Sequence record: LR756501.1
DNA: 64,000 nt
Strand: one strand, 5' to 3'
The notes under the pieces are model-generated. The model was not told the DNA's origin. It saw only the letters and a list, made by a program, of their open reading frames with translations, and did no database searches. The translations under genes were made by a program, and so were the position numbers. Within the stretch, counting starts at the first letter, position 1; the number at the start of each line of letters is the position of its first letter. Shown piece after piece: positions 11,131-60,639 of this stretch.

Positions 11131-12645
11131 TTAACTGGTCTTTTTACGAAACCTTCCCATTTTATCCCTGTAATAAGTTGGATGATAATCTTCTTTATCC
11201 TGGTTTTCACCCCATTCATCAAGGTTTTCAACAGGTTTAATTCTTGGTTGTAATTGATCTTTTTCATCTGAAATTTTAGTGTTCTGAGCAATAACAACTT
11301 TTGGTTCTGGTTGAGCCACTGGTTGAACAACAGGTTGTTCAACTTTATCAGTTAGATTATTAAGATCTTCTTCTGTTAAATAAAAACTACCTCTTTCATC
11401 GTGAGGTGGCATTGTGCTTCTTTGTGCCATAATAAGTTTTCCGTCAGCGTCAATATTTTTAGCCCAAGTGTAATGTGGGAAATAATGGCACATTGCTTCG
11501 TATTCTTCATTTGTTAAAGGTCTTTTAAATGGTTGTTTTGGATTAACTGTCCCATTTGGAGATTTTCTTGGATCAATATCTATCTTAGGCGTATGAGACT
11601 TTTCTTCTTCTAATCTTTGTTTAACAAATTGTTTAGGACAAAAAGCGTGATAAGTGTTTACCCAACTATAATTGTTATAAGGTGGAGGTAAACTACTTGG
11701 GTTATCAGTTAATAGATTATGTTCAAAATTAACATACATTGAATCAAATGGGCAATAATAAGTGAATCTTGTTTCTAATGATATACACAATCCACTATAA
11801 TTAGGACCGCCCTGTTTTACTACAGCATTTGGATATTTCTTTCTTAAATAATCTAACATCATAACATCATATTTACCACTCACACCGTAATAATTTCCCC
11901 ACACAGTATGAAATTCGCCCTTCTTATATAATTTACTATCACATACCTGAATACCTTGTTGAAAAGATCTTCTAGCCATAATAACTCCGTTATCCCAAAC
12001 TACAACAACACCACATTGATCAGGATTTTTAGTATAAATATCGAATTCACTAACCTTAGGTTCTGTATATTTACCAAATTGATTCTCAGCCTGATGGAAA
12101 TTAGCACAACTATATCCAAAATTCTTTGATAATTCATTCTTATAGTTATAAGCTCTTAAAGAATCCATACCTCTGAATTCCTCAACTCTACAAGACGTAT
12201 CTTTTACACTTGCTAACTTGTTCACAAAAGCTTCAATATCAGTTTGTTTAATGTTGGTATTAATATATGATTCGTTGAAAATTTCCTTTAGAACTTTAGT
12301 TGCTTTCATTTTAACTCTTCTTGTGGAAGACCATTTATCTGGTGATTCGTCGAAATATCTTGATTTCAAAAAAGAAATATTACCTTCGTCGTCTATATCA
12401 AGATAGTTAACTGGATCTTTTGCTAAATATTTCCTAGTTACTCCGCCTTCTAATTTTGATAAAAGTTCGGCGACTTTATAACTGTCTTTCATAGAAGAAA
12501 TCAATTTCTTTAATTTTTCAGATATATGAAAATTGACTACTTCTTCTGGATCTATCGCAACAGGTTCAGGTCTAACAAATTCAGGTCTAGCACCTTGATC
12601 TAAACCTTCGTCTAAAAATTGTAAAAATTTTCTAATTCTAGTCAT
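11131..12645 (-). CDS. hypothetical protein, paralog of 12652-13983
   Basis: Shared LKSRYF, RAYNY, CANFHQ, RRSFQQG, YCPFDSM; leader MTRIRKFLQFLDE. Confidence 0.75.
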   Translation of the reverse strand: MTRIRKFLQFLDEGLDQGARPEFVRPEPVAIDPEEVVNFHISEKLKKLISSMKDSYKVAELLSKLEGGVTRKYLAKDPVNYLDIDDEGNISFLKSRYFDESPDKWSSTRRVKMKATKVLKEIFNESYINTNIKQTDIEAFVNKLASVKDTSCRVEEFRGMDSLRAYNYKNELSKNFGYSCANFHQAENQFGKYTEPKVSEFDIYTKNPDQCGVVVVWDNGVIMARRSFQQGIQVCDSKLYKKGEFHTVWGNYYGVSGKYDVMMLDYLRKKYPNAVVKQGGPNYSGLCISLETRFTYYCPFDSMYVNFEHNLLTDNPSSLPPPYNNYSWVNTYHAFCPKQFVKQRLEEEKSHTPKIDIDPRKSPNGTVNPKQPFKRPLTNEEYEAMCHYFPHYTWAKNIDADGKLIMAQRSTMPPHDERGSFYLTEEDLNNLTDKVEQPVVQPVAQPEPKVVIAQNTKISDEKDQLQPRIKPVENLDEWGENQDKEDYHPTYYRDKMGRFRKKTS

Positions 12646-12651
12646 ATATAA

Positions 12652-13983
12652 TTATTTCTTTTCTTCTTCAACGTGTTTAATATTTTTAGGATTACAAGCA
12701 AATAACTTACCTGTATCGTCCCATCTTATTCTATATTTACCGTCTTCACGTGTTTCAACAAAGACTGCTGTTTTACCAAAATAATCTGGCTTTTCAGCTA
12801 CAGCTATCACCTCTTCTTCTTTAGCTTTACCAGCCCTTGGAGCCTTTGGGGCCTTAGGTGCTTTAGGTTGTCTCACGTAAACAACTTTTTCACCAGGTAA
12901 GAATGGTCTTGGTGGTGGAGGTGGTGGTGGTACCTCGGGCATTGGTTCTGGCTCTAATTCACCCTTTTCTTCTCTTATTCTTCTATTTACTAAATCTTTA
13001 GGGCAATGAGCGTGGTATGTTCCCATCCATTTTAAATTTTTTGGGTACCCTTCTTTTTCTAATTCTTTGTTTGCACCACCATATCCATCAGATAATAAAT
13101 TGTATTCAAAACAAACACTCATACTATCAAACGGACAGTATTCAGCAAATCTTGTCTCCATCTTTATAACAAAATCACCGTGACCCATTGATACGGCGTT
13201 GTATTTATTTACAAGATAATCAGTTACTAATTTATCAAATTTTCCACCTCTGCCAGCTACACCGTAACCGTTACCATATACTGTAGCTAAATCTCCCTTT
13301 TTAAATCTTCCACTGGTTATTAAGTTAGCACCTTGTTGGAAAGAACGTCTGTACATAACTTTACCATTTTCCATAATTACAACAACACCACAATTCGCTG
13401 GATTTTTCACGTAAACATCGTATTGTGCTAGTGTTGGCTCAGCGTGACCACCAAAATTATTTTTTCTTTGATGAAAATTAGCACAAGTATAACCAAAATC
13501 CTTGGCACATTCTTCTGTGTAATTATAAGCTCTAAGTAAATCTTTTCCTCTCCATTCTAATATTTGAACACCTTTACTGGCTTTCATTGCGGCCAATTTA
13601 GCAAGATACGTTTCAACATCTGTGTCCTTAATATTGGCTTTTGAAAAAGCTTCACTATACGTATCTCTTAGTACTTTTCCTGTTTTTTGTTTTATTCTTC
13701 TTTTTGTAGCCCAAACATCACCATCGGCGAAATATCTGGACTTTAAATAACTAGTGTAATCACCGATATCTTCTATTTCAAAATAGTCCGCAGGGTCCTT
13801 TGATAAGTCTGTCCTATTCACACCTTCACCCAACTTTAAAAACAAATCAGCGATCTTATATTCTTTCCTTAGAGGAGTTAAAAACTTAATCATCTTATCA
13901 GACAAATGGAGTTTAACCACATCTGGTTCACCTACTCCGTCTTCAACTAGCTCATTCAAAAACTGACCGTATTTCTTTATCAT
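12652..13983 (-). CDS. hypothetical protein, paralog of 11131-12645
   Basis: Same motifs; leader MIKKYGQFLNE; Pro-rich linker and C-terminal SH3-like segment. Confidence 0.75.
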   Translation of the reverse strand: MIKKYGQFLNELVEDGVGEPDVVKLHLSDKMIKFLTPLRKEYKIADLFLKLGEGVNRTDLSKDPADYFEIEDIGDYTSYLKSRYFADGDVWATKRRIKQKTGKVLRDTYSEAFSKANIKDTDVETYLAKLAAMKASKGVQILEWRGKDLLRAYNYTEECAKDFGYTCANFHQRKNNFGGHAEPTLAQYDVYVKNPANCGVVVIMENGKVMYRRSFQQGANLITSGRFKKGDLATVYGNGYGVAGRGGKFDKLVTDYLVNKYNAVSMGHGDFVIKMETRFAEYCPFDSMSVCFEYNLLSDGYGGANKELEKEGYPKNLKWMGTYHAHCPKDLVNRRIREEKGELEPEPMPEVPPPPPPPRPFLPGEKVVYVRQPKAPKAPKAPRAGKAKEEEVIAVAEKPDYFGKTAVFVETREDGKYRIRWDDTGKLFACNPKNIKHVEEEKK

Positions 13984-13998
13984 AGCTTTTTTTATTTA

Positions 13999-14882: not shown

Positions 14883-15479
14883 ATGAAGGTGATAAAGTTC
14901 TCTGACTACTTAAAAGAATCCCAGAACATAAGTCAAAACGACGGAATATTAGTCGTTGTTGACGTTCAAAAACAATTTGATAAATTCATCCCACAAAACT
15001 TCGAACAAAACATATCCAAGTACTGCGAAGAATTTCCTAAAGACGATAATACAGGTAAAGGAGTTTACCAAATATGGGACGCCAACAAAGCTCAGAACTT
15101 TAGTTATAACTTTCCTAACACTATACAGACAGTTAAGAAGAACTACGGAACTAAATTTGATAATGGTATTAAACAAATAGCAGATAACCTTCTTAAACAA
15201 AACCCGAAAGTGGGAGCCAAGTTCAAACTCAACAATAAAAATGCTTACCTTATCAGAGTTGATAATAACCATAAATGGTTCTATGTTAATGAAGATCTTT
15301 ATAGTCTTTATCTTAAATTGAAAGGAAAGAGTATTGTATTGGTTGGTGGAGCAGACGATGAATGTTTAGAAGATGTTTACGTATCTATGAAAGCGTTTGG
15401 AGTAAATCCAACATATAATCACGATTACATATATGACGCACAAAATAATGATAAACAGGTAGCCGCGCCAAAAAAATAG
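14883..15479 (+). CDS. isochorismatase/cysteine hydrolase-like protein
   Basis: ILVVVDVQKQF and IVLVGGADDECL; leader MKVIKFSDYLKE. Confidence 0.55.
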   Translation: MKVIKFSDYLKESQNISQNDGILVVVDVQKQFDKFIPQNFEQNISKYCEEFPKDDNTGKGVYQIWDANKAQNFSYNFPNTIQTVKKNYGTKFDNGIKQIADNLLKQNPKVGAKFKLNNKNAYLIRVDNNHKWFYVNEDLYSLYLKLKGKSIVLVGGADDECLEDVYVSMKAFGVNPTYNHDYIYDAQNNDKQVAAPKK

Positions 15480-16762: not shown

Positions 16763-18397
16763 TTACTGACTATAAATTTTATCGTAAAACCTTGTTATTA
16801 CATCTATTATTTTCTTTATCTTACCTTCTTTCCTTAACTTCTTGAAAACTAAATTCTCAATAGAAAATTCTCCTTCTTCTGTAAGACCTTCTTTTCTAGA
16901 CTTCATAATCTTAGATTTTAACTCATTGGCGTTTTCGTAATATTCTTCTGCTTCTTCGGGTGATAAATCTTGTTTAGATAACTTTTCATATTTAAGTATA
17001 TCATATACCCTAGCGTCGTACTTCACATTCACGTCTTTAGTATCTACATTGGGTGGATTGTAAACAGGCTTTGTTATCCATTCGTCATTTAATAACGAAT
17101 ACAAACCTGTTGCGTTATGTTCTTCTGTTTCATCTTGAATATACAACTCTACATCGTGTCCTTTAATGACTATATTATGCCTAAGGTTCCATATAAATCT
17201 TTGACCGTCAATAGCTTTCTTAACAAGATCAGTATCTTCATTAATATCTTTAAAATCACATACTATATGAACATCAATATCTGATTCTTCTGTATAGTTA
17301 TAATTTGCCATAGAACCAGTAAGATGAATATCTTTTATTTCTGTTTCTAATTCAACGTCGTTAAAGAAATCTTTTGCTATTTTAATAAGTTTTTCTCTTA
17401 TTCTTTCTATGAGTTTATCATCTTCCCATAAATCTTGGCAAAGAGTTTTCTTATAAGGAATTTTTCTTTCTAGTACAGCTTCTTTTCTTTTACACATTAA
17501 ATCTATTGTTCTATAATTACGTGTTTGTCCACCATCGAATCTAACGTCCCATTCAAATGCTTCTGGCCATGTTCTCTTTTTTGGCTTATTTAAAATAACA
17601 CCAATTCTTCCAACTAGTCCCCCATTTATCCCTCTACCTCTAGCGTAAAAACCATCTGGTCTCAATCTTACTTCCTCTCCTTGTTCAAATTTATAATCAT
17701 TTGGTGCTTCCATCCAAATATCATCGTAATCCCATTCTTCTTCACCATAAGGATCGAAATCATTATTTTCCTTCACATCGCTCCATTCTTCTTCACCATA
17801 TGGATCTTCTTTTGTATAAACCCTTTTTGTTTTTTTGACTTTTGGTTTTATTGTAAAAGTATCACAACCTTTACTATCAACTAAACAATAACCGTCTTCT
17901 GATTGACCAGAAGCGTAATCTTCATAAGAACAAGAATCACCGTTAAAGAATTTACATTCATAATCTTTAGACTCTTTTAGCATATCATCCCATTCTTCTT
18001 CCCCGTAAGGATCAAATTGTTTCATATCATCTAAGAATTTTTGTTTTGCTTCAGCCTTCCTTATTTTTTCTTCATCTCTTTCTTTTCTATTATTATTAAA
18101 TTCATTCTTTTTATCTTTATATTCTTTCTCAGTAGAATAAAGATCTTCTCTATTTATCCATTTAATCTCTTTCCCACTTTTCTTGTTTCTTAAAGCGTAC
18201 CAAATTAACCCATTACCATCCTCATATGTATTAATAACTTCGTTTTCACCGTAATATTTAGATAACATTTGAAATTCAGCAACGTACCAAACGGTATCAC
18301 CTTTCTTAAATTTACTAGCTCTTAAAAGATTAGATAACCTCTTATCAAATTCACTAAGCTCAAATTCTTCTTTTATAAATGAATTGTATTTTAACAT
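16763..18397 (-). CDS. multidomain protein: SH3-like modules, 3x DPYGEEEW, C-terminal Pol-beta-superfamily nucleotidyltransferase
   Basis: LTGSMANYNY..SDIDVH..DVELY = GS/DxD/third acid pattern. Confidence 0.8.
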   Translation of the reverse strand: MLKYNSFIKEEFELSEFDKRLSNLLRASKFKKGDTVWYVAEFQMLSKYYGENEVINTYEDGNGLIWYALRNKKSGKEIKWINREDLYSTEKEYKDKKNEFNNNRKERDEEKIRKAEAKQKFLDDMKQFDPYGEEEWDDMLKESKDYECKFFNGDSCSYEDYASGQSEDGYCLVDSKGCDTFTIKPKVKKTKRVYTKEDPYGEEEWSDVKENNDFDPYGEEEWDYDDIWMEAPNDYKFEQGEEVRLRPDGFYARGRGINGGLVGRIGVILNKPKKRTWPEAFEWDVRFDGGQTRNYRTIDLMCKRKEAVLERKIPYKKTLCQDLWEDDKLIERIREKLIKIAKDFFNDVELETEIKDIHLTGSMANYNYTEESDIDVHIVCDFKDINEDTDLVKKAIDGQRFIWNLRHNIVIKGHDVELYIQDETEEHNATGLYSLLNDEWITKPVYNPPNVDTKDVNVKYDARVYDILKYEKLSKQDLSPEEAEEYYENANELKSKIMKSRKEGLTEEGEFSIENLVFKKLRKEGKIKKIIDVITRFYDKIYSQ

Positions 18398-18479: not shown

Positions 18480-19760
18480 ATGGTAAGAAAGAAAGATGAA
18501 GACATTATTACAGCTCTAAGAAATGTGATGGATAATAGTTACTTCAGGGATATGACTTCTGCTCTCAAATCTAATGGGAAAAGTAAGCCAGTTGAAGACT
18601 TTAACATCCTTGATGAATACCAATCAACATTCAACGAGACACCAAGTTTATTAAAAATAACTCACGACGATTGTGATCTTTTCTTATACGAAAAACTAAA
18701 GAAAATGTTAAAAGAGGAATTTGGGGCATCCAGAGTTCTATTTAACGACACAGAATACAATTTAAAAAGAGAAAAATATATAGCCAATCGCGAAGTGTGG
18801 TACATCGCCGACGGCTACCTTCTTAACCTATGGACAAGCGAATCTAAAAATATATACGCTAACCCAGAATTAGACGTTAAACTAAATAAACACGACCAAC
18901 TTATAGAAGGTAACACTCTTCTCGTTCCACCACACGGTTCAAATAGAACAAATAAAGATATAGAAGAAAGAGTTATTAAAACTTTCAAAACCACAACCAT
19001 CAAAGAATACGAAAGAAACTCTATCGGTATGATGAGCGTTGAAGGATCTGGTGATCTTTATGTTAAAGAATTTACACTAGATAAAAAGTTTAAAATCAAC
19101 GATCTAGACCTACACTACGGAGACGAGTTTAAAACATTCCACGCAGAACTCTTTAAAAAACTTAAAGGTGATAAAAAAGGATTAGTACTATTACACGGCG
19201 ATCCAGGGACAGGTAAAACATTCTATATTAGATACTTACTTCAATGTTTGGCTAAAACGAAGAAGAAGGTTTTATATTTTCCACCAAGTATGGTAGAGGC
19301 TGTAACAGATCCAACGTTCTTTAATTTCATCACAAATTGGACTATGGATAACGGTAAGAATTCTATTCTTCTAATTGAAGACGCCGAACCACTTTTGGTA
19401 TCGAGAGAGGCTAATCGTAATATGGGTATAACAAACCTTCTTAATTTAACTGATGGTATATTGAATGATATATTATCTATTCAGATTATAGCCACATTTA
19501 ATACTAGTCTTGGTGAATTAGATAAGGCATTACTTAGACCAGAAAGGTTAATTGCTAGAAAAGAATTCAAGAAACTAACAGTTGATAATTCTAAAAAATT
19601 GGTAGAATTGTTGGGTATGGATCCAGCAACAGTAACAAAAGAAATGTCTTTGGCTGAAATTTATTCTGTGAAGAATGATAACGAAGTTTTACTTCACGGT
19701 GTGGATAAAAACAAGGCGGCTGGGGAAAGAACAGCGATAGGATTTGGTAATAAAAGATAA
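18480..19760 (+). CDS. AAA+ ATPase
   Basis: GDPGTGKT, LLIEDAE, ATFNT, DKALLRPERL. Confidence 0.9.
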   Translation: MVRKKDEDIITALRNVMDNSYFRDMTSALKSNGKSKPVEDFNILDEYQSTFNETPSLLKITHDDCDLFLYEKLKKMLKEEFGASRVLFNDTEYNLKREKYIANREVWYIADGYLLNLWTSESKNIYANPELDVKLNKHDQLIEGNTLLVPPHGSNRTNKDIEERVIKTFKTTTIKEYERNSIGMMSVEGSGDLYVKEFTLDKKFKINDLDLHYGDEFKTFHAELFKKLKGDKKGLVLLHGDPGTGKTFYIRYLLQCLAKTKKKVLYFPPSMVEAVTDPTFFNFITNWTMDNGKNSILLIEDAEPLLVSREANRNMGITNLLNLTDGILNDILSIQIIATFNTSLGELDKALLRPERLIARKEFKKLTVDNSKKLVELLGMDPATVTKEMSLAEIYSVKNDNEVLLHGVDKNKAAGERTAIGFGNKR

Positions 19761-19761: not shown

Positions 19762-19790
19762 AAAAAAGGGGAACTAAGTTCCCCTTTTTT
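19762..19790. terminator. bidirectional intrinsic terminator
   Basis: AAAAAAGGGGAAC-taa-GTTCCCCTTTTTT. Confidence 0.85.
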
Positions 19791-20911
19791 TATAATGGTA
19801 TATCATTTTTCATTTCATCTGGCGTTTTACCAGTAGCTTTTCCAAGTATATCTCTTATTTGAATAAGTTCTGGTTTTTTATCTTCTGGAAGATTTGTAAT
19901 GCCTCTTAAAAGTTTAGCTACACTTTCTTTATTCTGGGTAACTTTAGTATTTTTAGTTACAGCAGTAAAAGCGTCTTCTTGTCCAACTTTAGAAGGTGGT
20001 TTCAGACCTTGTAATTTCTTTAAACTAGCACCCAATAATTGTTCGTTTACCCAGGCTGTTGCTGGGGCTGTTAAATTAGCTATAGTTCCTTTCGGTGGAG
20101 CATTAGGATCTGTTTTAGCTGGTGGAGTCGCAGCTGGTTTGGCCCCTTCGGCTGGTGTTGCAGCTGGTTTGGCTCCTTCGGCTGGTGGAGTTGCTGTTTT
20201 GTTTCTAGTTGAAACTGGATTTCCATTAGCGTCATATTCGTATTCTTCGTTTAAGTACCTAAATTTTTCAGGAACGTGATCACCCCCACTACTAGCTATT
20301 GTAGCATTTTTATCTTTTTGATTTGGTTCGGTTGGAGCTGGAGCAGCAGGTTGTTGAGGATCAACAGCGTCAATATTTGTTTGTTTTTCTAAATATGTTT
20401 TTAATTCATTTTCATCGTAAGCTGGTTGTTGACCGTTTTGACCTTTATTCATTTCTATGATTTTAGCGTTCAAAGAATTAGCCAAAGCTGCCTTAAAGTC
20501 CTTAGCTTTATCAAAAGCAAACATTTGAGCGTTAGGTGTTCCTTCGAAGATTTTTCTTGGAGTTGCTTCTTTTTGACCGTATCTATTAAACAAAACCATT
20601 AATTCAGTAAAAACTGTATCAGATACATCAACTAGAAGTTTTCTTAATCCTAGTGGACCTGTTACTGTTTTTAGTCCTTCCGTCATTTTGTTTTTCACGT
20701 CACCGTCTGCTTGTTCCATGAATTTTACTGCTTCTTCCCAAGTTTTAGTGCCGTCTATTTTCTTGGTGAAGTTATTTATAGAATCAGCAAATTTCTTATC
20801 CATTTTGCCAAATATAGTGCTAAGAAGGTTTTTTACGGCTCCCCATAATAACTCTTCATTCACAGCGTCTTTGAATTCTTCAAAGTGTCTAATATTTTTT
20901 AAATCTTCCAT
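19790..20911 (-). CDS. hypothetical protein with Pro/Ala-rich linker
   Basis: Leader MEDLKNIRHFEEF; PAEGAKPAAT repeats. Confidence 0.7.
   Translation of the reverse strand: MEDLKNIRHFEEFKDAVNEELLWGAVKNLLSTIFGKMDKKFADSINNFTKKIDGTKTWEEAVKFMEQADGDVKNKMTEGLKTVTGPLGLRKLLVDVSDTVFTELMVLFNRYGQKEATPRKIFEGTPNAQMFAFDKAKDFKAALANSLNAKIIEMNKGQNGQQPAYDENELKTYLEKQTNIDAVDPQQPAAPAPTEPNQKDKNATIASSGGDHVPEKFRYLNEEYEYDANGNPVSTRNKTATPPAEGAKPAATPAEGAKPAATPPAKTDPNAPPKGTIANLTAPATAWVNEQLLGASLKKLQGLKPPSKVGQEDAFTAVTKNTKVTQNKESVAKLLRGITNLPEDKKPELIQIRDILGKATGKTPDEMKNDIPL
20118..20194 (-). repeat. intragenic tandem repeat, ~30-33 nt unit, 2.5 copies
   Basis: gctggtggagtcgcagctggtttggccccttcg / gctggtgttgcagctggtttggctccttcg / gctggtggagttgc. 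Confidence 0.8.
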
Positions 20912-20931: not shown

Positions 20932-21462
20932 TTATTCTTTACTTATGTCCCCGTGATAAATACCATGTTCACCACGTAACTTATCTAATCTGCCTTGAAA
21001 ATTAGATTTCTTACCTGTCTTTGTATTAAAAACAAAACCACCTCCTCTGTTCACTCCGCCAATATCTTCAAGAGCATCTTTAATTTCTTCTATTTTAGCT
21101 TTACCAGATTTCATCTTTGCTAATTTCAGAACGTCTTTTTCTTTAGAGATCTCTTCATTCATTAAATTTAAGAGATAATCTAAATCATCTATTATATCAG
21201 AACCATGTAATTTCTTATATTCGTCAAGATAGTTTCCTTCGTAATATGTGATCACATCTGGATTCTTTTTCATAGTTAATATAAAATCCATTAGATTTGA
21301 AGCTACAATGCCAACTTTATATGGTATTTTGCGATCACTACCTGTTAAGAAATTCTTAATTTTCCCAATAGTTATAGCTCCCCCTATGAGGACTTTGATG
21401 GCCCCTCTTAATAATTTACCTTCATTCAATGTGAAGTCTTCGAAATTGATCAGATTATTCAT
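20932..21462 (-). CDS. hypothetical protein
   Basis: Leader MNNLINFEDFTLNE. Confidence 0.7.
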   Translation of the reverse strand: MNNLINFEDFTLNEGKLLRGAIKVLIGGAITIGKIKNFLTGSDRKIPYKVGIVASNLMDFILTMKKNPDVITYYEGNYLDEYKKLHGSDIIDDLDYLLNLMNEEISKEKDVLKLAKMKSGKAKIEEIKDALEDIGGVNRGGGFVFNTKTGKKSNFQGRLDKLRGEHGIYHGDISKE

Positions 21463-21470: not shown

Positions 21471-21728
21471 TTATTTTTTTAAATGTCTTTTTGATGATTT
21501 ATATAAATCGAAAACCACATCAGCGGATTTCTTAATATTATTTGCTTGGATATGTTTAGAGAAGAATCCTGACAGGTACCTCAAAGTCATAGCAGCGGCG
21601 TATAGTTCATCTTGACTACTATTCAATCTATCGTCAAAGAAATTGACGCTGACCTCTGCTTTGTCTTCATCAGAAAAAGGAATATTAATTTCTTCGTTAA
21701 ATGGTTTTAAATGGTTTAACTTTTTCAT
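21471..21728 (-). CDS. hypothetical protein
   Basis: Leader MKKLNHLKPFNEE. Confidence 0.65.
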   Translation of the reverse strand: MKKLNHLKPFNEEINIPFSDEDKAEVSVNFFDDRLNSSQDELYAAAMTLRYLSGFFSKHIQANNIKKSADVVFDLYKSSKRHLKK

Positions 21729-21835: not shown

Positions 21836-24800
21836 ATGGACTCCATAAATTCATTTGTTACATTAGCGGAAAAAATTACAATCCTTAACAAGAATTGTGT
21901 TGAAATATTAACAAAAGTGAACGATTTAGTATCCAGTCAAAGCGATAGTGTTAATATCGTTTACGACGACAACGGTGCAGTAAATTCATTCTCTCAGCCT
22001 ACTGTTGGATATTTGAAAAATCAAATAGACGTTCTCAATCAAAATATGAAAAGAATGGCGTCTATTGATGGATATACCTTTATTAGAGACGGTCAATCAT
22101 TCAAAAGAATTATGACTTCTGATCTTAATAGAGAGCCAGCACCTATTCAAGAAATTAATCAAGTTAATACATTTACACCAGTAAATAATCATTTCTTTGA
22201 ATCTCTTATGAACCCTATGTTAGCTGTAACTATTAATTTGAGAGATAAAGTGGAGCAAGTTGTTAATAAAATTGTTTCACGTAGGTACATTGTTAGATTC
22301 GAAAAGAATCTTGACGGAAGTCTTACTGAAGCTGGTCTCAGATCTTTTAATAGTTTCTCTACTCAATTTTTAAATAAAACTGGTATTAACATATCAGACT
22401 TCATCTCTTGGTACGATAATCCATCTAATGACGGTCTTATTGTAGATACAGTTAAACCGTACGACGAACAAATTTACGATATGGCTCTTAAAACTTTGAA
22501 CTATTACGGAGTGTTCTCTGTTATAAAAGTTGAAATAGATGATATTAACAATAAAATGTGGTACCACCTAAACGATATTAAATACTACGGTAACGACGGT
22601 ACAATTAAGAATTTAACTATTGGTGACGAACTTATTGTTAATAGATTAAACGCTGGAACAAGATATAAAATTAAAGAAGTAAATACTGATTCTTCAAATA
22701 CTAAAATCAGATTAGAAAATGTTGAAGGTTACGATCCTGTTGTGGTTGGCACAAACGTTTTAAAATATTATAGTGATATATCAGCAGATAAAAACGTACA
22801 AATCAACGTAGGTTTTGACGAATATATCGTACTCTTTGTTAAACCTATTAATACTGACGATAATATAGTAGGTACTCTTTGGAGTAAAGGTATATCATTT
22901 TATACAAACGATCTCATTCTTGATATTAATAACAATATTAATTTAGCAAATTATTACGTTGAGGCTGTTTACGATTACGGTACTTGGTTAAGGGATCAAT
23001 TAACAAAAAGTATTCCTACAATTTACGGAGCAACACCAAACCCTGTTACTCTAACATCCGAGAATTTTAAAGTTGTACAGATAAATAAACACTTAACAGA
23101 TAACGTAGATCAAAACGCCATTTTGAAAGCACACGCTGATAAATCAACTGTTAAAACACAAATATCACAATTAAATACTGCTATTACTCAAAAAACTGGA
23201 AAGTTAAATAGCGCAGGTTTAACAACAGTTGAAAAACAAGCTTATTTAACAGAAATTAATAAAATGAAGACTGATTTAAATATTTCAACAAATAATTTGT
23301 CTTCTTTGGTAACTGAAATTACAAATTTAAGTACGGGTCAAAATAATAACGTTGCTGCTAAATACAGAGTAAGAGGATTTTGGACAATGCCAGAACCTAT
23401 TCAAACAGGTAAAACTCCACCTCAACATGTTGTTCAATTTAGAGTTCAATATAGATACAGCTCAAGAAGTGGTAACTCTAATAACATTCAAACATTCAAT
23501 TATATCAATGTTCAACAACCATCTACTACAACTACACCAACAACTACAAGTGGAACAATTGTGAGAACTAACGTTAACACAACAGCTAGAACAGGTGGAG
23601 CAGCTTTAGCAGCCACCGCTTCAAATCAAAACAGAAACGCTGGTAATTCTAATTTAGGTAAAGCTACAACTTTACCGCCTGTTAATGTTGGTAAAACTGT
23701 ACCAGTTGCTTCTACTCAAGTATCTACTACAACTGAGAACCCACCAACTGCACCAAAATACGCTAACTTTTCTAACTGGGTGGAATTTTTATCAGATGTA
23801 AGAAAACGTTACTGGGACGAAAATAGTAAACAATGGTACTGGAAAATCGAAGACGTCTCTGACGCTGAGACACCAAATATCAATCAATTAGATATAGCAA
23901 TTCAACAAAATGAAAGAGTTGAAATTAGAGTCAAATCAATTTCAGAAGTTGGTTGGCCTGACTCACTTATAGAATCAGATTGGAGTAATGTATTAACTGT
24001 TGATTTTCCAAATGATTTAGGCGATGTTTTGGCTGATAATCAATTCATTTTAGCTGAAGCGACACAAGATAAAACTACTGTTGTATTAGAATCAACTTTA
24101 AGTAGTAAAGGTGTTAATCAACATGTACAAGATAGTTATGTTGCTGGACAAGATTATGTAGCACATAAAGATACTAGTATTCAAGTTGGAATTGGATTTA
24201 ATTCTATCAATAATCCAAATTTATTCCAATATTTAACGTATTTAACTGATAGAATAGCCAAGTTAGAACAAACTATAGCTGGGGCTAAAGGTACTCTTAA
24301 AATTACTTTATTTAAGAAATCTACAGAACTCAAGACTATTGCCAACAACACAACAACTATAATTAATGTAGAGTGTGAAGATTACGGTACAGTGGTAACA
24401 GGTAGAACATATGTAAATTCAATTAATATAATAGAGGACTACGTTTTATCTTTTGAAAATACAAATCAAAGTGGTAATTTGGGTTTCTTATCCAGTAGAC
24501 TCTATACAAGTGGAGGTACTAACGCTTTTTATTCAGCGGGAGGTGACGAAAATAAAGTATTATTAGTAGACTGGAACAGTAATCTATATAATCAAAATGA
24601 TAATCAATTTGTATGGTTTGCTGATAGAGATAATAATGATTGGATTTCAAGTGGGGCAACAAATCTGAATACTCCATATATTTTAAATTTACCAAGTTAT
24701 AATTTCGGTACAACTGGTACTTCAACTACTAGTACACCTCTGTGGAACGTGAATAGTATATTCACTACTGCCCCTTCAACTGACTTATTATGTGCTGTTT

Positions 24801-46699: not shown

Positions 46700-46703
46700 G
46701 TTT

Positions 46704-46979: not shown

Positions 46980-46981
46980 AA

Positions 46982-48942: not shown

Positions 48943-48944
48943 AA

Positions 48945-49154
48945 TTAAAAGGGTAAATAATAGTACAAACTAAAATTATTAAAATCAACTATTATTTCTT
49001 TTTTTGTTTTTATTTTAACATACTCTTGCCAAGACATACCTATATATTCGATATAGTCCAAAAACATACTTCTCAAGATATCGTAATTCAAAGCGAAATT
49101 ATCAATCTCTTTGATTATATCACCAAACTCCAATACTTGTTTGTTCTTTTCCAT
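48945..49154 (-). CDS. hypothetical protein
   Basis: 69-aa ORF, TAATG overlap. Confidence 0.5.
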   Translation of the reverse strand: MEKNKQVLEFGDIIKEIDNFALNYDILRSMFLDYIEYIGMSWQEYVKIKTKKEIIVDFNNFSLYYYLPF

Positions 49155-49711: not shown

Positions 49712-50100
49712 TCCGCGTCATTATTTGATACGTTCTGGTCAACTTCCACTGGTTGAACATCCATATTTGTAAAATCCATATTCATTGTAATAGTTGTTCT
49801 TCCAATATTTCCACCGACACTTGATACATCGTTAAAAATTGGTTCCCAATTATTATCACTCCAATCAGAATATCTTTGTGAAGATGATGTGTAACCACCA
49901 CCACTACTACCGTAACCTGAAAAACCAGAATTAGATTTTGGTTTAATTAAAAAATCTAATACGTTTTTATGATATGTTATCTTACCTTTGTCCAAAAGAG
50001 TATCGAGGAAGCATCTATCATAGTCTAATATGTCTTTGATAGTCCTTCCTCGATATTTACCGAACCATATCTTATCATTAAGTCTTACTTCTTTGGGCAT
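49708..50100 (-). CDS. FGKxxG-domain protein, paralog of 49154-49711
   Basis: MPKEVRLNDKIWFGKYRG. Confidence 0.6.
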   Translation of the reverse strand: MPKEVRLNDKIWFGKYRGRTIKDILDYDRCFLDTLLDKGKITYHKNVLDFLIKPKSNSGFSGYGSSGGGYTSSSQRYSDWSDNNWEPIFNDVSSVGGNIGRTTITMNMDFTNMDVQPVEVDQNVSNNDAE

Positions 50101-50118
50101 TTTTTACATTTTAAGAAG

Positions 50119-50126
50119 CAAATATA
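50119..50126 (-). promoter_or_regulatory. Bacteroidota-type -7 box TATATTTG
   Basis: 18 nt upstream of ATG 50100. Confidence 0.5.
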
Positions 50127-50140
50127 AGAATTTTTTCTCT

Positions 50141-51010
50141 TTAAGAAAAATTTCTCACACCGTTTTCATTGATATTGTCGAACTTTTTCTTTACTTTCTT
50201 CTGTATTAATTCTCTACCTTTCTTAATCTGAGATTTTATAGTAGATAAATTAGTTGTTGTTATATACAACCCTTGTGTAGCAGTCAACGTACTATCTACA
50301 ACAAAACTATCATTCATACCTCTTTCCCATTCTATATCATCACGAGTGATAGTCACGTTGTCTTGTGGAGATATGATTCTCTCATACTTGTTCTCACCGT
50401 CTTCTGATACAAAATTGATTTTAATATCACCAGATCCAATATTCTCCAAATCCAAACTAAAAAAATCTTCTGGATTTTCTAACATCATATTGTCTTCATT
50501 GATGTCCAGTCTTATTTCTTTCTTAATAGAATCTGCTATGTCCTTATACGCCATGTGATTAAGTTCTCTCATTACCATTACTTTTTTATACTTATCTGGT
50601 AAGTTCTCAATCACTTCGTAGACTATTTCACATTTCTTTTTGTTCTCTTCTTCCTGTATAGAAAAATCTCCACCGTCATCAGATTTAAGTATGTTCAATA
50701 TACTTGGAGCTTCCGCTGTATCTCTTTCTAATGATATGAAATTATATCTATGATTATCTTTCCATTCTTTAATTACAAGATTTATGGCAATCTTGGTCAA
50801 CCACGTTTTAAATAAACTCTTTTCTTTATTATATGTTTCTATTTTCTCCAGAGACTGCATAAATGCCTGGTTAGCAAAATCTTCAGCTCTATCCATATCT
50901 TTAGTGTAACACTTAGCAATATACCAAGTTAGTGAGGGCTTGTTTTCGTTGTAGTAACTTTCAAAATCATGCCCTGTAATGTCTTTAAATAATTTTTCAT
51001 ATTTATTCAT
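50141..51010 (-). CDS. ECF-type RNA polymerase sigma factor with insertion in region 4
   Basis: Region 2 AEDFANQAF..FKTWLTKIAINL; region 4 LPDKYKKVMVMRE..YKDIA / NLSTIKSQIKKGR. Confidence 0.88.
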   Translation of the reverse strand: MNKYEKLFKDITGHDFESYYNENKPSLTWYIAKCYTKDMDRAEDFANQAFMQSLEKIETYNKEKSLFKTWLTKIAINLVIKEWKDNHRYNFISLERDTAEAPSILNILKSDDGGDFSIQEEENKKKCEIVYEVIENLPDKYKKVMVMRELNHMAYKDIADSIKKEIRLDINEDNMMLENPEDFFSLDLENIGSGDIKINFVSEDGENKYERIISPQDNVTITRDDIEWERGMNDSFVVDSTLTATQGLYITTTNLSTIKSQIKKGRELIQKKVKKKFDNINENGVRNFS

Positions 51011-51093
51011 ATTAAATATTTTATTTTTGATTCAATTTATAGAATTGAATTCCAACACATGACGTAAATCATGCAAAATCATGATATAATAAC

Positions 51094-51519
51094 TTATAAT
51101 TTACTAATTAAATCTTTTTGTGTTTCTTTTATTCGCTCAATTTTTTTCTTATTTCCTTGACCTTGATATAAATCGTCCGGTATATTCTCATTAAGCACTT
51201 TATTAATATTCATTGCGTATTCAAACAATATAGAATTAGTTTCATCCATTTCAATATAATCATATTTCAGTTGTTGTAATGGAGTTGTCAAATCTACATC
51301 GTGTTTATAAAGCCATGATATTAGCTCTGGATTACTGAATGAAACCAAACACTTCTCGTTGTGACACGGTGTTACATCATCCTTAGCATTGTATTCTATT
51401 CCACAGCTCTCAATTTCATCTGCTTCATATATTGTCTTAGTGTACTCTACACTATTATCAAACATCTCATTTAGAAATTCTTGACAGTCTTCTCTTGTTA
51501 AATCTTCTATTCGCTTCAT
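51094..51519 (-). CDS. hypothetical protein
   Basis: 141-aa ORF. Confidence 0.6.
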   Translation of the reverse strand: MKRIEDLTREDCQEFLNEMFDNSVEYTKTIYEADEIESCGIEYNAKDDVTPCHNEKCLVSFSNPELISWLYKHDVDLTTPLQQLKYDYIEMDETNSILFEYAMNINKVLNENIPDDLYQGQGNKKKIERIKETQKDLISKL

Positions 51520-51552
51520 ACTGTTAGTTTTATAGTAAATGTTATATATTAA

Positions 51553-51816
51553 TTATTTATTGTCATTTTTATCATTTCTGACATTATCTATCCATTCTTC
51601 AAATGATTCGTATTTTTGTACTTTTGATAAGAAGTAACCACCAACGATATCAGTCTCTTTAGCTGCTTCAAATGAGTTTTTAGCAAATATCATCATGACT
51701 TCTATTGTGTATTCTAGTTGGCATTTTTCGTGTGTATCGTACATTAATTCGTACCAAGATTCGTATGAATGTTCGTTAGCAAATTCCTTTAAAATTTCTT
51801 CTGGTGTTTTACTCAT
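51553..51816 (-). CDS. hypothetical protein
   Basis: 87-aa ORF. Confidence 0.6.
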   Translation of the reverse strand: MSKTPEEILKEFANEHSYESWYELMYDTHEKCQLEYTIEVMMIFAKNSFEAAKETDIVGGYFLSKVQKYESFEEWIDNVRNDKNDNK

Positions 51817-52277
51817 ACTAATTCAGTTAGTAGGGTTAGTTCTCTTTTTTTAATTTTGATTAAGTCATCTAGCGATTCTATTGTGAACAATCTGTCAGTT
51901 TTATCGAATACCCACAAATTAACGTCACTCACGTGCGCAACAAAAGACCACCCTTCCTTGATCTTTATTATATCATCTGGGTAGTCTTTCAATTCGTAGT
52001 ACCTGATAAACTCGTCAATAATTTTATCACTTAATTTTTTAATGTAAACTAGATGGCAATAGGTAGTATGGCCAAAGTTAAGTCCATATTCTTCTGGATC
52101 TATATGTCTCAATTTAAACTTCTTTTCGAAGTAAGACAAAAAGTCCAGTTGTTCGTCGTGTTTTAAACACTCTTCTTCTGTATCAAAAATTGTGCCGTCT
52201 TTTGATACGAAGATGTCCATTTCGACTTCTTCTTCAATCGTTTTAACGATTACTCTTCGTGTAGTTATTTTTTCCAT
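51813..52277 (-). CDS. hypothetical protein
   Basis: FVSKDGTIFDTEEECLKHD, a common small phage-protein pattern. Confidence 0.65.
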   Translation of the reverse strand: MEKITTRRVIVKTIEEEVEMDIFVSKDGTIFDTEEECLKHDEQLDFLSYFEKKFKLRHIDPEEYGLNFGHTTYCHLVYIKKLSDKIIDEFIRYYELKDYPDDIIKIKEGWSFVAHVSDVNLWVFDKTDRLFTIESLDDLIKIKKRELTLLTELV

Positions 52278-52633: not shown

Positions 52634-53188
52634 ATGGTTCAAATTTCAAAATATGAAGATTTTAAGAAAATGAATTCTTTGTTTTCCAGAGAACACGATA
52701 GAATAGTTAAAAAATATAACATTGAGTTTATTTCGTTAAAGGGCGTAAAAATCCCTCTTATATGTTTATATGAAATTGTTTCCACTTTGTTTGAAAATAA
52801 CTCAATAAATCTTAAAATTTCTGACGTAATATTATTAACACTTTCGGCTATAGGTCTACTCTCAAAGGAGAACAAAGACCAAGTTAGAATTTTACTAGAT
52901 TTATGTAAAGATAAAAAAATTTTAGGACATTTCATATTAGTTAAAAATACAATTAAATCTTTAAAAAATTTATTAAATATTATCTTCAAAAAAGAAGGTG
53001 TTGTTATTCAAAACATTGAACAAGCTTTAAAATATAGATATTCGGTAGATGCTTTAAGTTTAGCTTGTTCGTACATTAGAATAGATAAGATTAAGATAAA
53101 AGATTTTTGTTACTGGTACATAGTAGATAAACGTGGCAAAGAGTCAAAAGAATTAATTGACTACATTAACATTAACTATTATATTTGA
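52634..53188 (+). CDS. hypothetical protein
   Basis: Leader MVQISKYEDF; TTATATATA at 52606-52614. Confidence 0.65.
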   Translation: MVQISKYEDFKKMNSLFSREHDRIVKKYNIEFISLKGVKIPLICLYEIVSTLFENNSINLKISDVILLTLSAIGLLSKENKDQVRILLDLCKDKKILGHFILVKNTIKSLKNLLNIIFKKEGVVIQNIEQALKYRYSVDALSLACSYIRIDKIKIKDFCYWYIVDKRGKESKELIDYININYYI

Positions 53189-54762: not shown

Positions 54763-55662
54763 ATGATCAATTACTACGAACAATTCATTAAACCAAAGGA
54801 AATAGTCAAAGATATTAACTATTTCTACGATCAAATAAGAGATCTTATTTGTAACGATTTGTTTGGACAACACTTATATAATAAACGTAAAAAATTGAAA
54901 GTCGATAATTACGTTGTTAATAATTATCTATCAGGAATAAATAATACTAGACTCAGATTTATTAACGATACAATAATTGTGACTTTCAAAGTTAGTAAAT
55001 TTGAAAAAGGTAAAGCATCTATCACAAAACCCATATATAACAAGTATAATATAGATGGAATCACTTTTAATATAGATATTATAATAACTCCTCAAGAAGA
55101 AAGAAACAAAATAATACATTCTGAAAATTCAGCTCTTAAAGAATTAAGAAAGAACATTCACATTATAAACGAATATTACGTTAAGAATTTTAGAGAAGAC
55201 GAAGAATCTAAATATAAAATTATATATGATAGATTAATAAAGTTAGATAAAAGTTATTACAACGATTGGAATAGATTGATAAGCTTATTAAAAGAATGCA
55301 CTAATCCCACATTTAATGAAACATTATACAAGTTTAGAGAAATAATAGAAGGTACAAATTTTGATGTAATGATGACTGTATATAAGATGATACATCAAAC
55401 ACAATTTTTTCTAAAATACGCACATCATAGACAAATAAGATTTAAGAAATTCATAATATCTTTAAGAAAAGATTGTCTTGATGAAAATGAAATATTATAT
55501 TTAGGAAACAATCTATCCAAGTGTTTCGGACATACAATTAAAGATTATAATGATTGCGTATCATTTGTTGAGAATGTTATAAACCATTTCAACACAATAT
55601 GTTATGTAAAGGAGACGAAAATTAATACTTTTGCGTCTAAAGTTTGGGAAAGAGATCTATAA
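54763..55662 (+). CDS. hypothetical protein
   Basis: 299 aa; leader MINYYEQF. Confidence 0.7.
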   Translation: MINYYEQFIKPKEIVKDINYFYDQIRDLICNDLFGQHLYNKRKKLKVDNYVVNNYLSGINNTRLRFINDTIIVTFKVSKFEKGKASITKPIYNKYNIDGITFNIDIIITPQEERNKIIHSENSALKELRKNIHIINEYYVKNFREDEESKYKIIYDRLIKLDKSYYNDWNRLISLLKECTNPTFNETLYKFREIIEGTNFDVMMTVYKMIHQTQFFLKYAHHRQIRFKKFIISLRKDCLDENEILYLGNNLSKCFGHTIKDYNDCVSFVENVINHFNTICYVKETKINTFASKVWERDL

Positions 55663-58581: not shown

Positions 58582-59280
58582 TTATACGTATTCCCAATCT
58601 TCTTCACCGTAAGGATCTTCGGCTGTTATTGTTCTATGTATTTCCCTTTTAATTTCACAATTAATTAATCCATCATATGTTAAGCGATAGATTTTTTCGT
58701 TTTCGTCTCGAAATACAAAATGTGAAAATCTATGGTTTCTATCGTAAAGAACACCAGTTGCTATTAATTTGATTATATTAACTCTATTAAGATAATCTGT
58801 GAATCTAATAGTTTTACCTACAACGTTATCACCAAAATATCTAAGTGAAGCGGAAATAATGTCTTGTTGAAAATCTGAAAATACGATTTCATCGTTCGCG
58901 CTTTCACTAATATCTTCTTCACCGTAGGGGTCTAATTCATTAACATTTCTGTTAATTTTTCTAGACCAAGTTATTGTTGATTTTTCAGGGATAAGAAAAT
59001 CCTCTTCGTGACCGTTACTAACTCTACCAATAAAATGAAACTCATATCTCCTTTCATCTAGCACAACTTCACTAACTTTTATAGTTGCCCTGGCGTGCCA
59101 CGTTCTAAGAGGCATTTTAAGATACTCAGAAACATTAACTGTTCTACCTACCATTTCTTTTTTTAAATATTCAAATATATTATCGTAAGTTAAAAACTCA
59201 TCTCCCATCTCCCAAATAGATCTTGATATGGTTATATTTTCAACTGATTCTTTAACATAAGATGAAAAATTAATGATCAT
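58582..59280 (-). CDS. two-module hypothetical, each module ending in DPYGEE
   Basis: Leader MIINFSSYVKES; internal DPYGEEDI, terminal DPYGEEDWEYV. Confidence 0.75.
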   Translation of the reverse strand: MIINFSSYVKESVENITISRSIWEMGDEFLTYDNIFEYLKKEMVGRTVNVSEYLKMPLRTWHARATIKVSEVVLDERRYEFHFIGRVSNGHEEDFLIPEKSTITWSRKINRNVNELDPYGEEDISESANDEIVFSDFQQDIISASLRYFGDNVVGKTIRFTDYLNRVNIIKLIATGVLYDRNHRFSHFVFRDENEKIYRLTYDGLINCEIKREIHRTITAEDPYGEEDWEYV

Positions 59281-59746
59281 CCCAATCCTCCTCTCCGTAA
59301 GGATCGTGCTTAGATACTATGACTTTTGGTTGAATAAACGTGAATTCATACATTTCTTTAGTTGATAAAATGAAAAGAGAGTCATCAGCTTTTACGTTGA
59401 TAACGATAGAATCATCTATTACCTCAACACCGTGATTTTTACCAATGGTAATTTTATGACCACCCTTTGCTCCAAATACTAAGAAAGGTTCGTTTTGACT
59501 AATTAAAACTGTACTAGTGCCAATATGTCTCAATCTAATGTATCTACCACCAGACTCACATATCGCTTTAATTCTATTACCGCAAGCAATTATATCTTTA
59601 TGATCCAAATTGTACAATTCTTTCAAAGACATAACCATAGGTTTGCTTTTCCTATCATCTTCTGATTCGTGTGCTGGAAGAGCTAACGGCGCTTTCTTGA
59701 AAAGACTAGCATCAGATTGATCGAATTGTTCGTAAGTTCTTATCAT
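59270..59746 (-). CDS. hypothetical, leader + C-terminal DPYGEEDW
   Basis: MIRTYEQF...KHDPYGEEDWDDH; TTATATATA at 59752-59760. Confidence 0.75.
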   Translation of the reverse strand: MIRTYEQFDQSDASLFKKAPLALPAHESEDDRKSKPMVMSLKELYNLDHKDIIACGNRIKAICESGGRYIRLRHIGTSTVLISQNEPFLVFGAKGGHKITIGKNHGVEVIDDSIVINVKADDSLFILSTKEMYEFTFIQPKVIVSKHDPYGEEDWDDH

Positions 59747-59774
59747 AACCCTATATATAAAATTTTAATTTTAA

Positions 59775-60200
59775 TTAATCGTCCCACTCCTCTTCACCGT
59801 ATGGATCTTCTATTGTATATATTCTTTCGACTATTGCAACTTTAACAGGATATTCTAGGTTAACCATTATTTCAGCGTTTCTAATATCAAACCATATTTT
59901 ATAATTAGTTTTATTAGTGTGTCTATCATACTTTTCATGAAATTTTATTCCATCAACTATTACAGTCATTGGATCTACAACTTTAACTATTTCTCTTTGT
60001 ACAGCGTCTCCGTCTCTTTTTAAATTTTCATACATCCAATGAAATTGTACTCTCTTATTTAAAAACAATTTATCCAGATGTCTTGTGAGAAGTCCGTTAT
60101 CATTGAGTTCCCACATCTCAATAGTATCAATATAATCGTCACATATTTTTAGAAGATCGTAAGATTTATAACTGGAGAAATTAGCAAACTCTTTAATCAT
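59775..60200 (-). CDS. hypothetical, leader + C-terminal DPYGEEEW
   Basis: Start MIKEFANF inside upstream tag; ends IEDPYGEEEWDD. Confidence 0.72.
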   Translation of the reverse strand: MIKEFANFSSYKSYDLLKICDDYIDTIEMWELNDNGLLTRHLDKLFLNKRVQFHWMYENLKRDGDAVQREIVKVVDPMTVIVDGIKFHEKYDRHTNKTNYKIWFDIRNAEIMVNLEYPVKVAIVERIYTIEDPYGEEEWDD

Positions 60201-60639
60201 CCCATTCCTCCTCTCCATATGGATCTAATGTTTTATCTACTTGTACTTTTTTCCTTTCTTCCTTTAAATGTACAATTATAGGTTCTAATGGGTAAACTTC
60301 ATATGTATCAATATGACCAGATACCATAAAACTTATTGTTACATCGAGATCAAAGAATGATGTTACATCTACACTCAATATAACACCAGTAATCTTCATT
60401 CCCCTTTTTTTATCTATGTTTCCTTGTGGGTTTACATACTCTTCATCTTTATAAAATGCACAAAGTTTATTTAACACTTTCCTTTTTAATCTCTCTTCAA
60501 ATTCTATACAATCAACAAAGTTATCATCTGGATTACAACATCTTTCACCTATATCAGTAATACTAACTTCTTCTGTGAATGGATATTCTAACAGGAGATC
60601 ATCTATTTTATTTTCAAATATTTCAAATTTAGTTATCAT
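60193..60639 (-). CDS. hypothetical, leader + C-terminal DPYGEEEW
   Basis: MITKFEIFE...TLDPYGEEEWDD. Confidence 0.75.
   Translation of the reverse strand: MITKFEIFENKIDDLLLEYPFTEEVSITDIGERCCNPDDNFVDCIEFEERLKRKVLNKLCAFYKDEEYVNPQGNIDKKRGMKITGVILSVDVTSFFDLDVTISFMVSGHIDTYEVYPLEPIIVHLKEERKKVQVDKTLDPYGEEEWDD

Follow-up and report, generated by a model that had tools for sequence, protein, structure and literature searches.

The capsid targeting sequence (CTS) of bacteriophage T4 serves in biotechnology as a tool for the packaging of foreign proteins. It reads MKTYQEFIAE, and proteins fused to it are cut once and then stay in the head (PMC8442874). By suppressor mutagenesis, Mullaney and Black assigned targeting mainly to residues 4 and 7 and processing to residues 8 and 10, and an Asp at position 10 blocked processing but not targeting (PMC9026906). 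In the giant phages phiKZ, 201phi2-1 and SPN3US, propeptides of head, inner-body and ejection proteins are cut by gp175 or gp245 (PMC5694885, PMC9026906). A short N-terminal leader resembling the T4 CTS is described here in the 735,411 bp genome of an uncultured phage (LR756501.1). The point of departure was a stretch of 64,000 nucleotides (the window), corresponding to positions 441061-505060 of the plus strand of that record, for which an earlier reading of the letters alone (the original prediction) had noted such leaders on about 18 proteins and had quoted the T4 sequence as it is published (PMC8442874). Coordinates refer to the window unless preceded by 'record'.

The 735 kb genome was reported by Al-Shayeb et al. 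(2020) as a member of the 'Mahaphage' clade with a predicted Bacteroidetes host, in a paper that makes no mention of N-terminal leaders, internal proteins or proheads (PMC7162821). A limited literature search found no paper in which huge phages or megaphages are linked to a capsid targeting sequence. To our knowledge, none of the largest huge phages has been cultured. Window positions 40000-52000 are 100% identical to LR756501.1, and LR756503.1 is an identical record. The record carries no annotation, and the gene set used here comprises 979 genes (93% coding) from a simple codon-usage open reading frame (ORF) caller, with the first ATG taken as the gene start, a rule that is blind to the leader motif. 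As in Bacteroidota, starts lack a Shine-Dalgarno (SD) motif and have A-rich sequence at -18 to -10. Shuffled controls kept the composition of each N-terminus, and all family counts were made by blastp after the first 25 residues had been cut off.

Enrichment and conservation of the leader

The motif [FYW]xx[FYW][ILVM]x[ED] (strict type 1) occurs within the first 18 residues of 57 of the 979 proteins, against 4.5±2.1 in shuffles, and its rate of 5.8% at gene starts compares with 0.8% at internal Met positions; the 57 proteins represent 49 families. A second register, [FYW]x[ILVM][FYW]E (type 2, as in MIKKFKLFE), is found in 21 proteins, against 2.8±1.8 in shuffles. The enrichment over shuffled N-termini that the original prediction proposed as a test is borne out as a very strong excess in both registers. 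Combined, the two registers account for 86 proteins from 76 unrelated families and, with ~7 further leaders that are masked by miscalled upstream starts, the total is ~90 proteins or ~9% of the proteome (about one in eleven), far more than originally noted.

With residues numbered relative to a putative cut behind the Glu (P1), an iterated profile gathers 66 proteins with the pattern M-[IVL]-K-[KN]-[YF]-x-x-[FY]-[ILV]-[NK]-E-[ANS]-[VL], in which P7 is Y or F in 96%, P4 F or Y in 94%, P3 I, L or V in 95%, and P1 E in 91% and D in 8%. Of the type 1 leaders (n=66), 41 have their second aromatic at residue 7 or 8, and the Glu is at residue 10-11. The leader spans 9-14 residues, with the consensus M-I-K-K-Y-N-E-F-I-N-E-A-V-E, and type 2 has Ile or Leu at P3 and Glu at P1, so that the [IL]-x-E rule is kept in a shifted register. 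The core [YF]xx[YF][ILV][NK]E is found 48 times at gene starts, a version one residue longer not once and a version one residue shorter four times. Synonymous codon use in the leader is that of the gene bodies; since these codons vary as they do elsewhere in the genes, selection acts on the peptide rather than on an RNA or DNA element. Leader genes also cluster (20 adjacent pairs, against 7.4±2.5 expected), recalling the variable internal-protein loci of T4-like phages (PMC9026906). A Sec, Tat or lipoprotein signal peptide was considered and rejected on inspection, as such signals require seven or more hydrophobic core residues behind a basic n-region, whereas the consensus lacks a hydrophobic stretch and is interrupted by acidic residues.

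Tyr4, Phe7, Ile8 and Glu10 of the T4 CTS are the four conserved leader positions P7, P4, P3 and P1, and the CTS scores 11.3 bits on the LR756501 leader profile. The conserved positions thus match the targeting and processing determinants of T4, which, together with the concentration of the leader-tail motif in the protease-scaffold protein described below, upholds the T4-like interpretation with which the analysis began. The two elements share the extreme N-terminal location, a length of ~10 residues, aromatics three apart at about positions 4 and 7, an Ile/Leu-x-Glu followed by a small residue, and occurrence on unrelated proteins encoded by clustered genes. On the other hand, ~90 leader proteins (9% of the proteome) contrast with a handful in T4, P2 is Asn or Lys instead of Ala, the second register MIKKFK[IL]FE, with its second aromatic at P2, sets the present leader apart, and the LR756501 phage is uncultivated, with a predicted host in Bacteroidota.

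The leader is conserved beyond this genome. Homologues of the protein encoded at 12652-13983(-), collected from other metagenomes at 37-92% identity, carry it at their start in 20 of 20 cases. In the alignment of this family (fam1), which also included the 504-residue paralogue at 11131-12645(-), the leader Glu (E11) is among 22 invariant columns; the linker behind the leader varies from 0 to 45 residues and is unalignable, and the leader is kept even at 37-52% identity. A search of 50,697 phage records found no member of this family outside the LR756501 genome, and none in a cultured phage.

Motif counting at the DNA level in related phages gave an excess too small to interpret without gene starts, and whole genomes were therefore analysed. 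LR756504 (636 kb) has 27 strict leaders against 3.3 expected, with the consensus MK.[IL]KKFN.F[LI]NES, and LR756500 (462 kb) has 27 against 2.8, with the consensus MKYIKEYEEF[IL][NL]E; the cultured Tenacibaculum phage PTm1 shows no N-terminal enrichment (2 against 1.0 expected). In IMG/VR, the coding pattern M-I-K-K-[YF]-x-x-[YF]-I-N-E has 54 exact matches, many of them on contigs of 100-476 kb, against 0 for a control with one extra codon between the aromatics. The match starts at the first ATG of an ORF in 42 of the 54, and the neighbouring ORFs contribute 30 more leaders in both registers, against 6 in shuffles.

Leader-like sequences are also found inside two ORFs of LR756501: a perfect example, IKKYKGFLNENLG (21 bits), lies at about residues 250-262 of the 669-residue product of record 84154-86163(-), and a second at residue 167 of a 273-residue ORF at record 338-339 kb. 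Gene fusion, an internal start or a processing site within a polyprotein could account for them.

The head module and its protease-scaffold protein

A T4-like module of portal, protease-scaffold and Gp23-type major capsid genes occupies record 72-78 kb. The portal gene (record 71969-73795(+); phrog_213, 1.7e-66) and the capsid gene (Gp23, PF07068, 6e-24) enclose a gene for an 807-residue protein (record 73.9-76.3 kb), the first 250 residues of which are a head-maturation protease (phrog_207, 4.9e-27; PF03420 (Peptidase_S77), 24.1 bits, slightly below the 27-bit cut-off of the family). A sequence search of the PDB with the protease domain gave no match at an E value of 1 or better. Alignment with T4 gp21 showed that His85 and Ser140, which we take to be the catalytic pair of gp21, are kept. 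The gp21-like protease that the original prediction proposed to look for elsewhere in the genome is thus located, between the genes of a T4-type portal and a Gp23-type capsid protein. As a separate observation, the portal ends in a ~90-residue tail of Gly-rich repeats built from GGAQ and GGGF units.

As in T4, the gene of a gp21-family protease lies beside a Gp23-type capsid gene; unlike in T4, protease and scaffold form one polypeptide. The same capsid and protease lineage (capsid proteins 28-29% identical) and the same gene order are found in PTm1 and in the Lak megaphages, the comparison with Lak-B5 covering the surroundings of the head module. In PTm1, ORF-300, a fused 'prohead core scaffolding protein and protease', lies between the portal and capsid genes; unlike LR756501, PTm1 has neither leader enrichment nor an aromatic-pair scaffold repeat.

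The tail of the leader recurs within the protease-scaffold protein. Its five [ILVM]NE[AGS] sites (~0.23 expected) are the maximum of the proteome, in which non-leader proteins have 0.17 such internal sites per 1000 residues, and the looser [ILVM]xE occurs 34 times (14.5 expected). INEAV is present twice, at residue 18 and at residue 229, the latter being the boundary between protease and scaffold. The protease-scaffold protein also tops the [ILVM]NE[AGS] ranking in LR756504 (four sites) and in PTm1 (six sites). Leader proteins themselves have 3-6 times more internal sites of this kind than other proteins. The capsid proteins of LR756501, LR756504, LR756500 and PTm1 have [MIL]-x-E|N at about residue 43-45, directly preceding the conserved mature N-terminal region, in parallel with LTE|A at residue 65 of T4 gp23.

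Residues 315-482 of the protease-scaffold protein consist of ~13 tandem copies of a 14-residue unit, K-S-I-K-Y-S-E-Y-I-A-E-N-V-D (KSIKYSEYIAENVD). This unit and the leader have in common a Lys at P8, an aromatic at P7, Glu at P5, an aromatic at P4, Ile at P3 and Glu at P1, as well as Val or Leu at P2' and an acidic residue at P3', and the core Y-S-E-Y-I-A-E is close to Y-Q-E-F-I-A-E of T4. When the leader profile, built from N-termini only, was run over 193,875 internal windows, 21 scored at least 10 bits; the protease-scaffold protein accounts for six (0.085 expected), and the others occur singly, each in a different protein. LR756502 and LR756504 have 11 copies of the repeat each and LR756500 has two, while PTm1 and Lak-B5 have none. 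Judged from the sequences, imitation of the scaffold repeat by the leader appears well supported in LR756501 and is not universal. The T4 scaffold gp22, which starts with MLKEQLIAEA, is likewise rich in [IL]-A-E sites, but lacks the aromatic pair that is present in the LR756501 repeat.

The phiKZ-type phages resemble LR756501 in that they are giant phages with many head-internal proteins cut after Glu by a gp21 homologue and with paralogous cargo families. They differ in that their propeptides are mostly longer than 100 residues, against the 9-14 residues of the present leader, in their motif ([SAG]-x-E without an aromatic pair, where LR756501 has I, L or V at P3), in the number of processed proteins (8-19) and in that no repeat-built scaffold has been identified. 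SPN3US has a diverged second protease paralogue (PMC5694885), the counterpart of which in LR756501 is encoded at record 11317-11850(-): this copy of the protease domain is 46% identical to the real protease, with His85 replaced by Tyr and Ser140 by Arg. It is one of a number of small ORFs that correspond to copies or pieces of head genes (record 48028-48549(+), 145582-146127(+), 619760-620383(+) and others), among them portal pieces, a Gp23-type capsid piece and a 207-residue protein with three to four scaffold repeats; several end in a DPYGEENW tail.

Leader-bearing proteins and neighbouring features

About 85% of the strict-leader proteins have no Pfam match; the remainder include PPK2, a class I methyltransferase, a DeoC-type aldolase, a radical-SAM protein, a nucleotidyltransferase, DUF7919 and an Ig domain. 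Their median length is 230 residues, and with a median pI of 5.7 they do not differ from the remaining proteins of the genome, for which reason a basic, DNA-associated cargo similar to the T4 internal proteins was rejected; unlike IPI-III, the cargo is not small and highly basic, and it includes enzymes. This difference from T4 concerns the class of cargo and leaves the signal unaffected. PPK2 is encoded twice. The copy at record 152222-153436 has a strict leader and ~165 extra N-terminal residues, and the paralogue at 6736-7608(-), which lacks the leader, serves as an internal control; such a pair would be expected if the virion and the cytoplasm each had a copy of their own.

The largest family, fam1, has 20 paralogues, eight of them with a type 1 leader; four members lie just upstream of the head module and two in the window. 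The fam1 body is weakly GNAT-like (fold matches at E~0.01 only) and has structural relatives in other large phages. In an AF2 model of the 443-residue member at 12652-13983(-), the leader is predicted as a helix of residues 5-14 with low pLDDT, detached from a body with pLDDT of about 90. This protein starts with the type 1 leader MIKKYGQFLNE|L (25.6 bits), and its 504-residue paralogue at 11131-12645(-) with MTRIRKFLQFLDE|G (20.6 bits).

All 18 N-termini listed in the original prediction are genuine ORF starts (ATG in 17 and GTG in one, at 33591), although only 11 carry a strict leader. Graded by explicit definitions, namely M-[IVL]-K-[KN]-[YF]-x-x-[FY]-[ILV]-[NK]-E for type 1 and M-I-K-K-F-K-[IL]-F-E for type 2, seven are type 1 (starts 12645, 13983, 14883, 18397, 34339, 36283 and 59280), four are type 2 (33591, 33869, 34791 and 60639), one is partial, five have the aromatic pair only (20911, 52634, 54763, 59746 and 60200) and one has neither. 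Among the 63 genes called in the range 11131-60639, the aromatic pair occurs in 20 (9.1±2.5 in shuffles), the pair with Glu in 11 (2.8), strict type 1 in five (0.4) and strict type 2 in five (0.2), and none of 500 shuffles reached the observed value for any of these four definitions.

The remaining type 1 leaders of the window belong to a 198-residue ORFan without a Pfam match at 14883-15479(+) (MKVIKFSDYLKE|S, 19.4 bits), a 544-residue protein at 16763-18397(-) (MLKYNSFIKE|E, 19.8 bits) with a pol-beta-type nucleotidyltransferase domain at residues 326-392 (PF22600/PF01909), a 212-residue ORFan, also without a Pfam match, at 35645-36283(-) (MRIKGYNKFVKE|D, 14.9 bits), and a 232-residue ORFan at 58582-59280(-) (MIINFSSYVKE|S, 21.9 bits). 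Four small tandem paralogues at 33591-33872, 33869-34339, 34339-34794 and 34791-35279(+), for which a Pfam search gave no match, each start with MI[KR]K[FY][KR][IL]FE, followed 5-12 residues on by DPYGEE; they are listed together as type 2, with the one starting at 34339 graded type 1 under the explicit definitions. A 148-residue ORFan at 60193-60639(-) has the type 2 leader MITKFEIFE|N and a C-terminal DPYGEEEWDD tail.

The partial case, a 176-residue protein at 20932-21462(-) (MNNLINFEDFTLNE|G), has one residue too many between the second aromatic and L-N-E. The start of 19790-20911(-) (MEDLKNIRHFEEF) has the aromatic pair and no [ILV]xE in register, the pair alone is present at 52634-53188(+), 54763-55662(+), 59270-59746(-) and 59775-60200(-), and 21471-21728(-) lacks it. 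Since the bare aromatic pair is in excess genome-wide (245 against 132 in shuffles), some pair-only starts may be uncleaved variants, and others may be due to chance. Absent from the original list is a 245-residue TonB_C-domain protein at 29160-29897(-) (PF03544, 4.7e-22), the start of which, MKPFDEILFE, has a modest profile score of 15.7 bits; its status as a leader protein is uncertain.

The DPYGEE tag of the window was found to be a signal separate from the leader, as originally proposed, being located elsewhere in the proteins, mostly at the C-terminus, and absent from two related genomes that have the leader. In LR756501, 94 of the 979 proteins contain DPYGEExW, in 109 occurrences altogether, and Trp is at +7 in 103 of them. 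Of all 109 occurrences, 41 are at the extreme C-terminus (..R-V-F-S-E-L-DPYGEE[ND]W[ED][DE]*), 22 directly follow a leader and 46 are internal; in the window, the tag stands behind the leaders at 33591-35279(+) and at the C-termini of 59775-60200(-) and 60193-60639(-). Up to five copies per protein are seen, linker-like between modules (record 44452-46983 and 154863-158564). Its codons vary, so that selection acts on the peptide, and tag and leader tend to be found on the same proteins (odds ratio 5, p=5e-9). LR756504, LR756500 and PTm1 lack the tag.

The ATATATA boxes that the original prediction placed before most leader genes are present, but are not specific to them: TATATA at -35 to -22 precedes 53% of leader genes and 40% of the others with a real upstream spacer (p=0.16). 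A promoter association seen in a first pass (ATATATA before 42% of leader and 26% of other genes; ATATATAG, p=1e-7) was rejected, as it disappeared after the restriction to genes with spacers; part of that upstream k-mer signal arose because DPYGEE-coding 3' ends of upstream genes had been included. A second, host-like promoter class avoided by leader genes was looked for and not found. In the dominant promoter-like element, TATATA follows a T-rich and precedes an A-rich tract, and begins ~25-35 nt ahead of the ATG; this element is found upstream of ~40-50% of spacer-bearing genes, for example at record 71.9, 73.9 and 76.4 kb (portal, protease and capsid).

The window contains a run of N at 36961-36981, within a gene at 36264-37469(-) that has no leader and is outside the system. 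The frame is open across the gap if this is exactly 21 nt, and the repeat FK.GD.VYY...DTPYK is present on both sides, so that, given a 21-nt gap, a single gene is likely; no Pfam family bridging the gap was found. The nearest leader start (36283) is 678 nt away, and the findings on the leader are therefore independent of the gap. The repeats of this gene are of an SH3- or Tudor-like motif, FK.GD.VYY.G...DTPYK, and many other proteins encoded in the genome have K.GD.V behind their leader or linker. Neighbouring genes without a leader encode a UvsW-like DEAD-box helicase (31360-32922(+)), an AAA ATPase (18480-19760(+)) and two very large ORFans of 1094 and 1341 residues without a Pfam match (21836-29163(+)).

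Proposed function and significance of the leader

The explanation that we favour, with a probability of roughly 0.7, is that the leader is a T4-type capsid targeting and processing propeptide that has been expanded to ~90 proteins in the largest phages. The aromatics at P7 and P4, on one face of a short helix, would dock the protein onto the prohead scaffolding core, formed by the C-terminal half of the protease-scaffold fusion, the 14-residue unit of which the leader would imitate. After closure of the shell, the gp21-family serine protease would act on [ILV]-x-E, cutting behind the Glu at the end of each leader, within the propeptide of the capsid protein and in all scaffold repeats. This would dissolve the scaffold and leave the cargo free in the head, to be ejected with the DNA into the next host. 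The LR756501 phage would thus probably deliver a very large set of proteins into its host together with its DNA.

A propeptide removed by the same protease might also mark its bearers for a different fate, as accessory proteins of the core or scaffold, or as zymogens, that are degraded, expelled or kept inactive until late instead of being delivered. The enrichment of leader proteins in internal cleavage-type sites, as expected of degraded core proteins, the resemblance of the leader to a scaffold unit and the many enzymes among its bearers, for which an inhibitory propeptide is plausible, all point in this direction. Such sites are nevertheless absent from most leader proteins (15 sites in 102 proteins), 76 unrelated families are too many for structural parts of a core, and T4 CTS fusions stay in the head after a single cut (PMC8442874); we regard this fate as unlikely. 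Improbable, too, is that the leader is an amphipathic helix addressed to some other hub, be it a membrane, a phage-made compartment, a chaperone or an oligomerization partner, and resembles the T4 CTS and the scaffold by convergence. A short free helix is indeed predicted for the leader, the cargo is diverse and acidic to neutral, the promoter analysis gave no sign of co-expression with head genes, and LR756500 has the leader yet hardly any aromatic-pair scaffold repeat. Convergence would, however, leave unexplained both the near-invariant Glu at P1 with Ile or Leu at P3, which are determinants of gp21-type proteases, and the peak of the tail motif in the protease-scaffold proteins of three genomes, and the leader offers no hydrophobic stretch usable as a membrane signal.

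An origin at the nucleotide level, as a translation-initiation feature of an AT-rich genome without SD motifs, or in paralogy or chance, can be regarded as effectively refuted. Although starts lack an SD motif and are A-rich upstream, and all leader residues have AT-rich codons, composition-keeping shuffles give 4.5 instances where 57 are observed, a change of one residue in spacing abolishes the signal (54 against 0 in IMG/VR) and synonymous codons are no more uniform in the leader than in gene bodies. The 86 leader proteins represent 76 families, and the Glu does not vary among 20 diverged homologues.

Several points weigh against targeting to the head. Residence in the virion and cleavage of the leader are what we infer, not what was observed. 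The likeness between leader and scaffold is modest in LR756504, where the phage's own leaders retrieve three windows of its scaffold (0.18 expected), and a scan with its own leader profile finds none in LR756500, which has the leader. The cargo is not basic as the T4 internal proteins are, the set is very large, and among its members are seemingly ordinary enzymes (PPK2, DeoC aldolase, radical-SAM, methyltransferase, nucleotidyltransferase) that do not belong to the classic cargo of phage heads. The promoter analysis provided no evidence that leader genes are co-expressed with head genes. The leader profile was trained and counted on one genome, the independent tests being the regular expressions and shuffles, and six of the 18 N-termini originally listed are weak cases.

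Within the favoured explanation, targeting may operate by mimicry, a more tentative proposal to which we give somewhat less than even odds: the leader would be a single scaffold repeat, its bearers would co-assemble in the core, and the cuts that dissolve the scaffold would release them. The outcome, in the largest phages known, would be an injectable proteome of ~90 proteins, including nucleotide-, RNA- and protein-modifying enzymes, delivered before gene expression; binding of the leader to the scaffold and delivery of the cargo into the host are steps that we infer. With respect to described systems, the novelty lies in the scale, in the lineage, in the second register and in a leader that copies the repeat of a protease-scaffold fusion. 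The likeness between leader and repeat offers a simple and testable physical account of how a peptide of ten residues can target anything into a prohead.

If head targeting is correct, the sequence of the largest curated phage genome reveals ~9% of its encoded proteins as shipped in the head. The kinds of cargo would then outnumber those of T4 by an order of magnitude, and the list of leader proteins would become a list of candidate effectors of host takeover and anti-defence. The T4 CTS would then be an ancient and widespread device, found also in Bacteroidota phages that are remote relatives of T4. The motif is short and specific enough (54 against 0 matches in IMG/VR) to be used as an annotation rule for metagenomic phages and, if mimicry holds, the virion cargo of uncultivated phages would be readable directly from their sequences.

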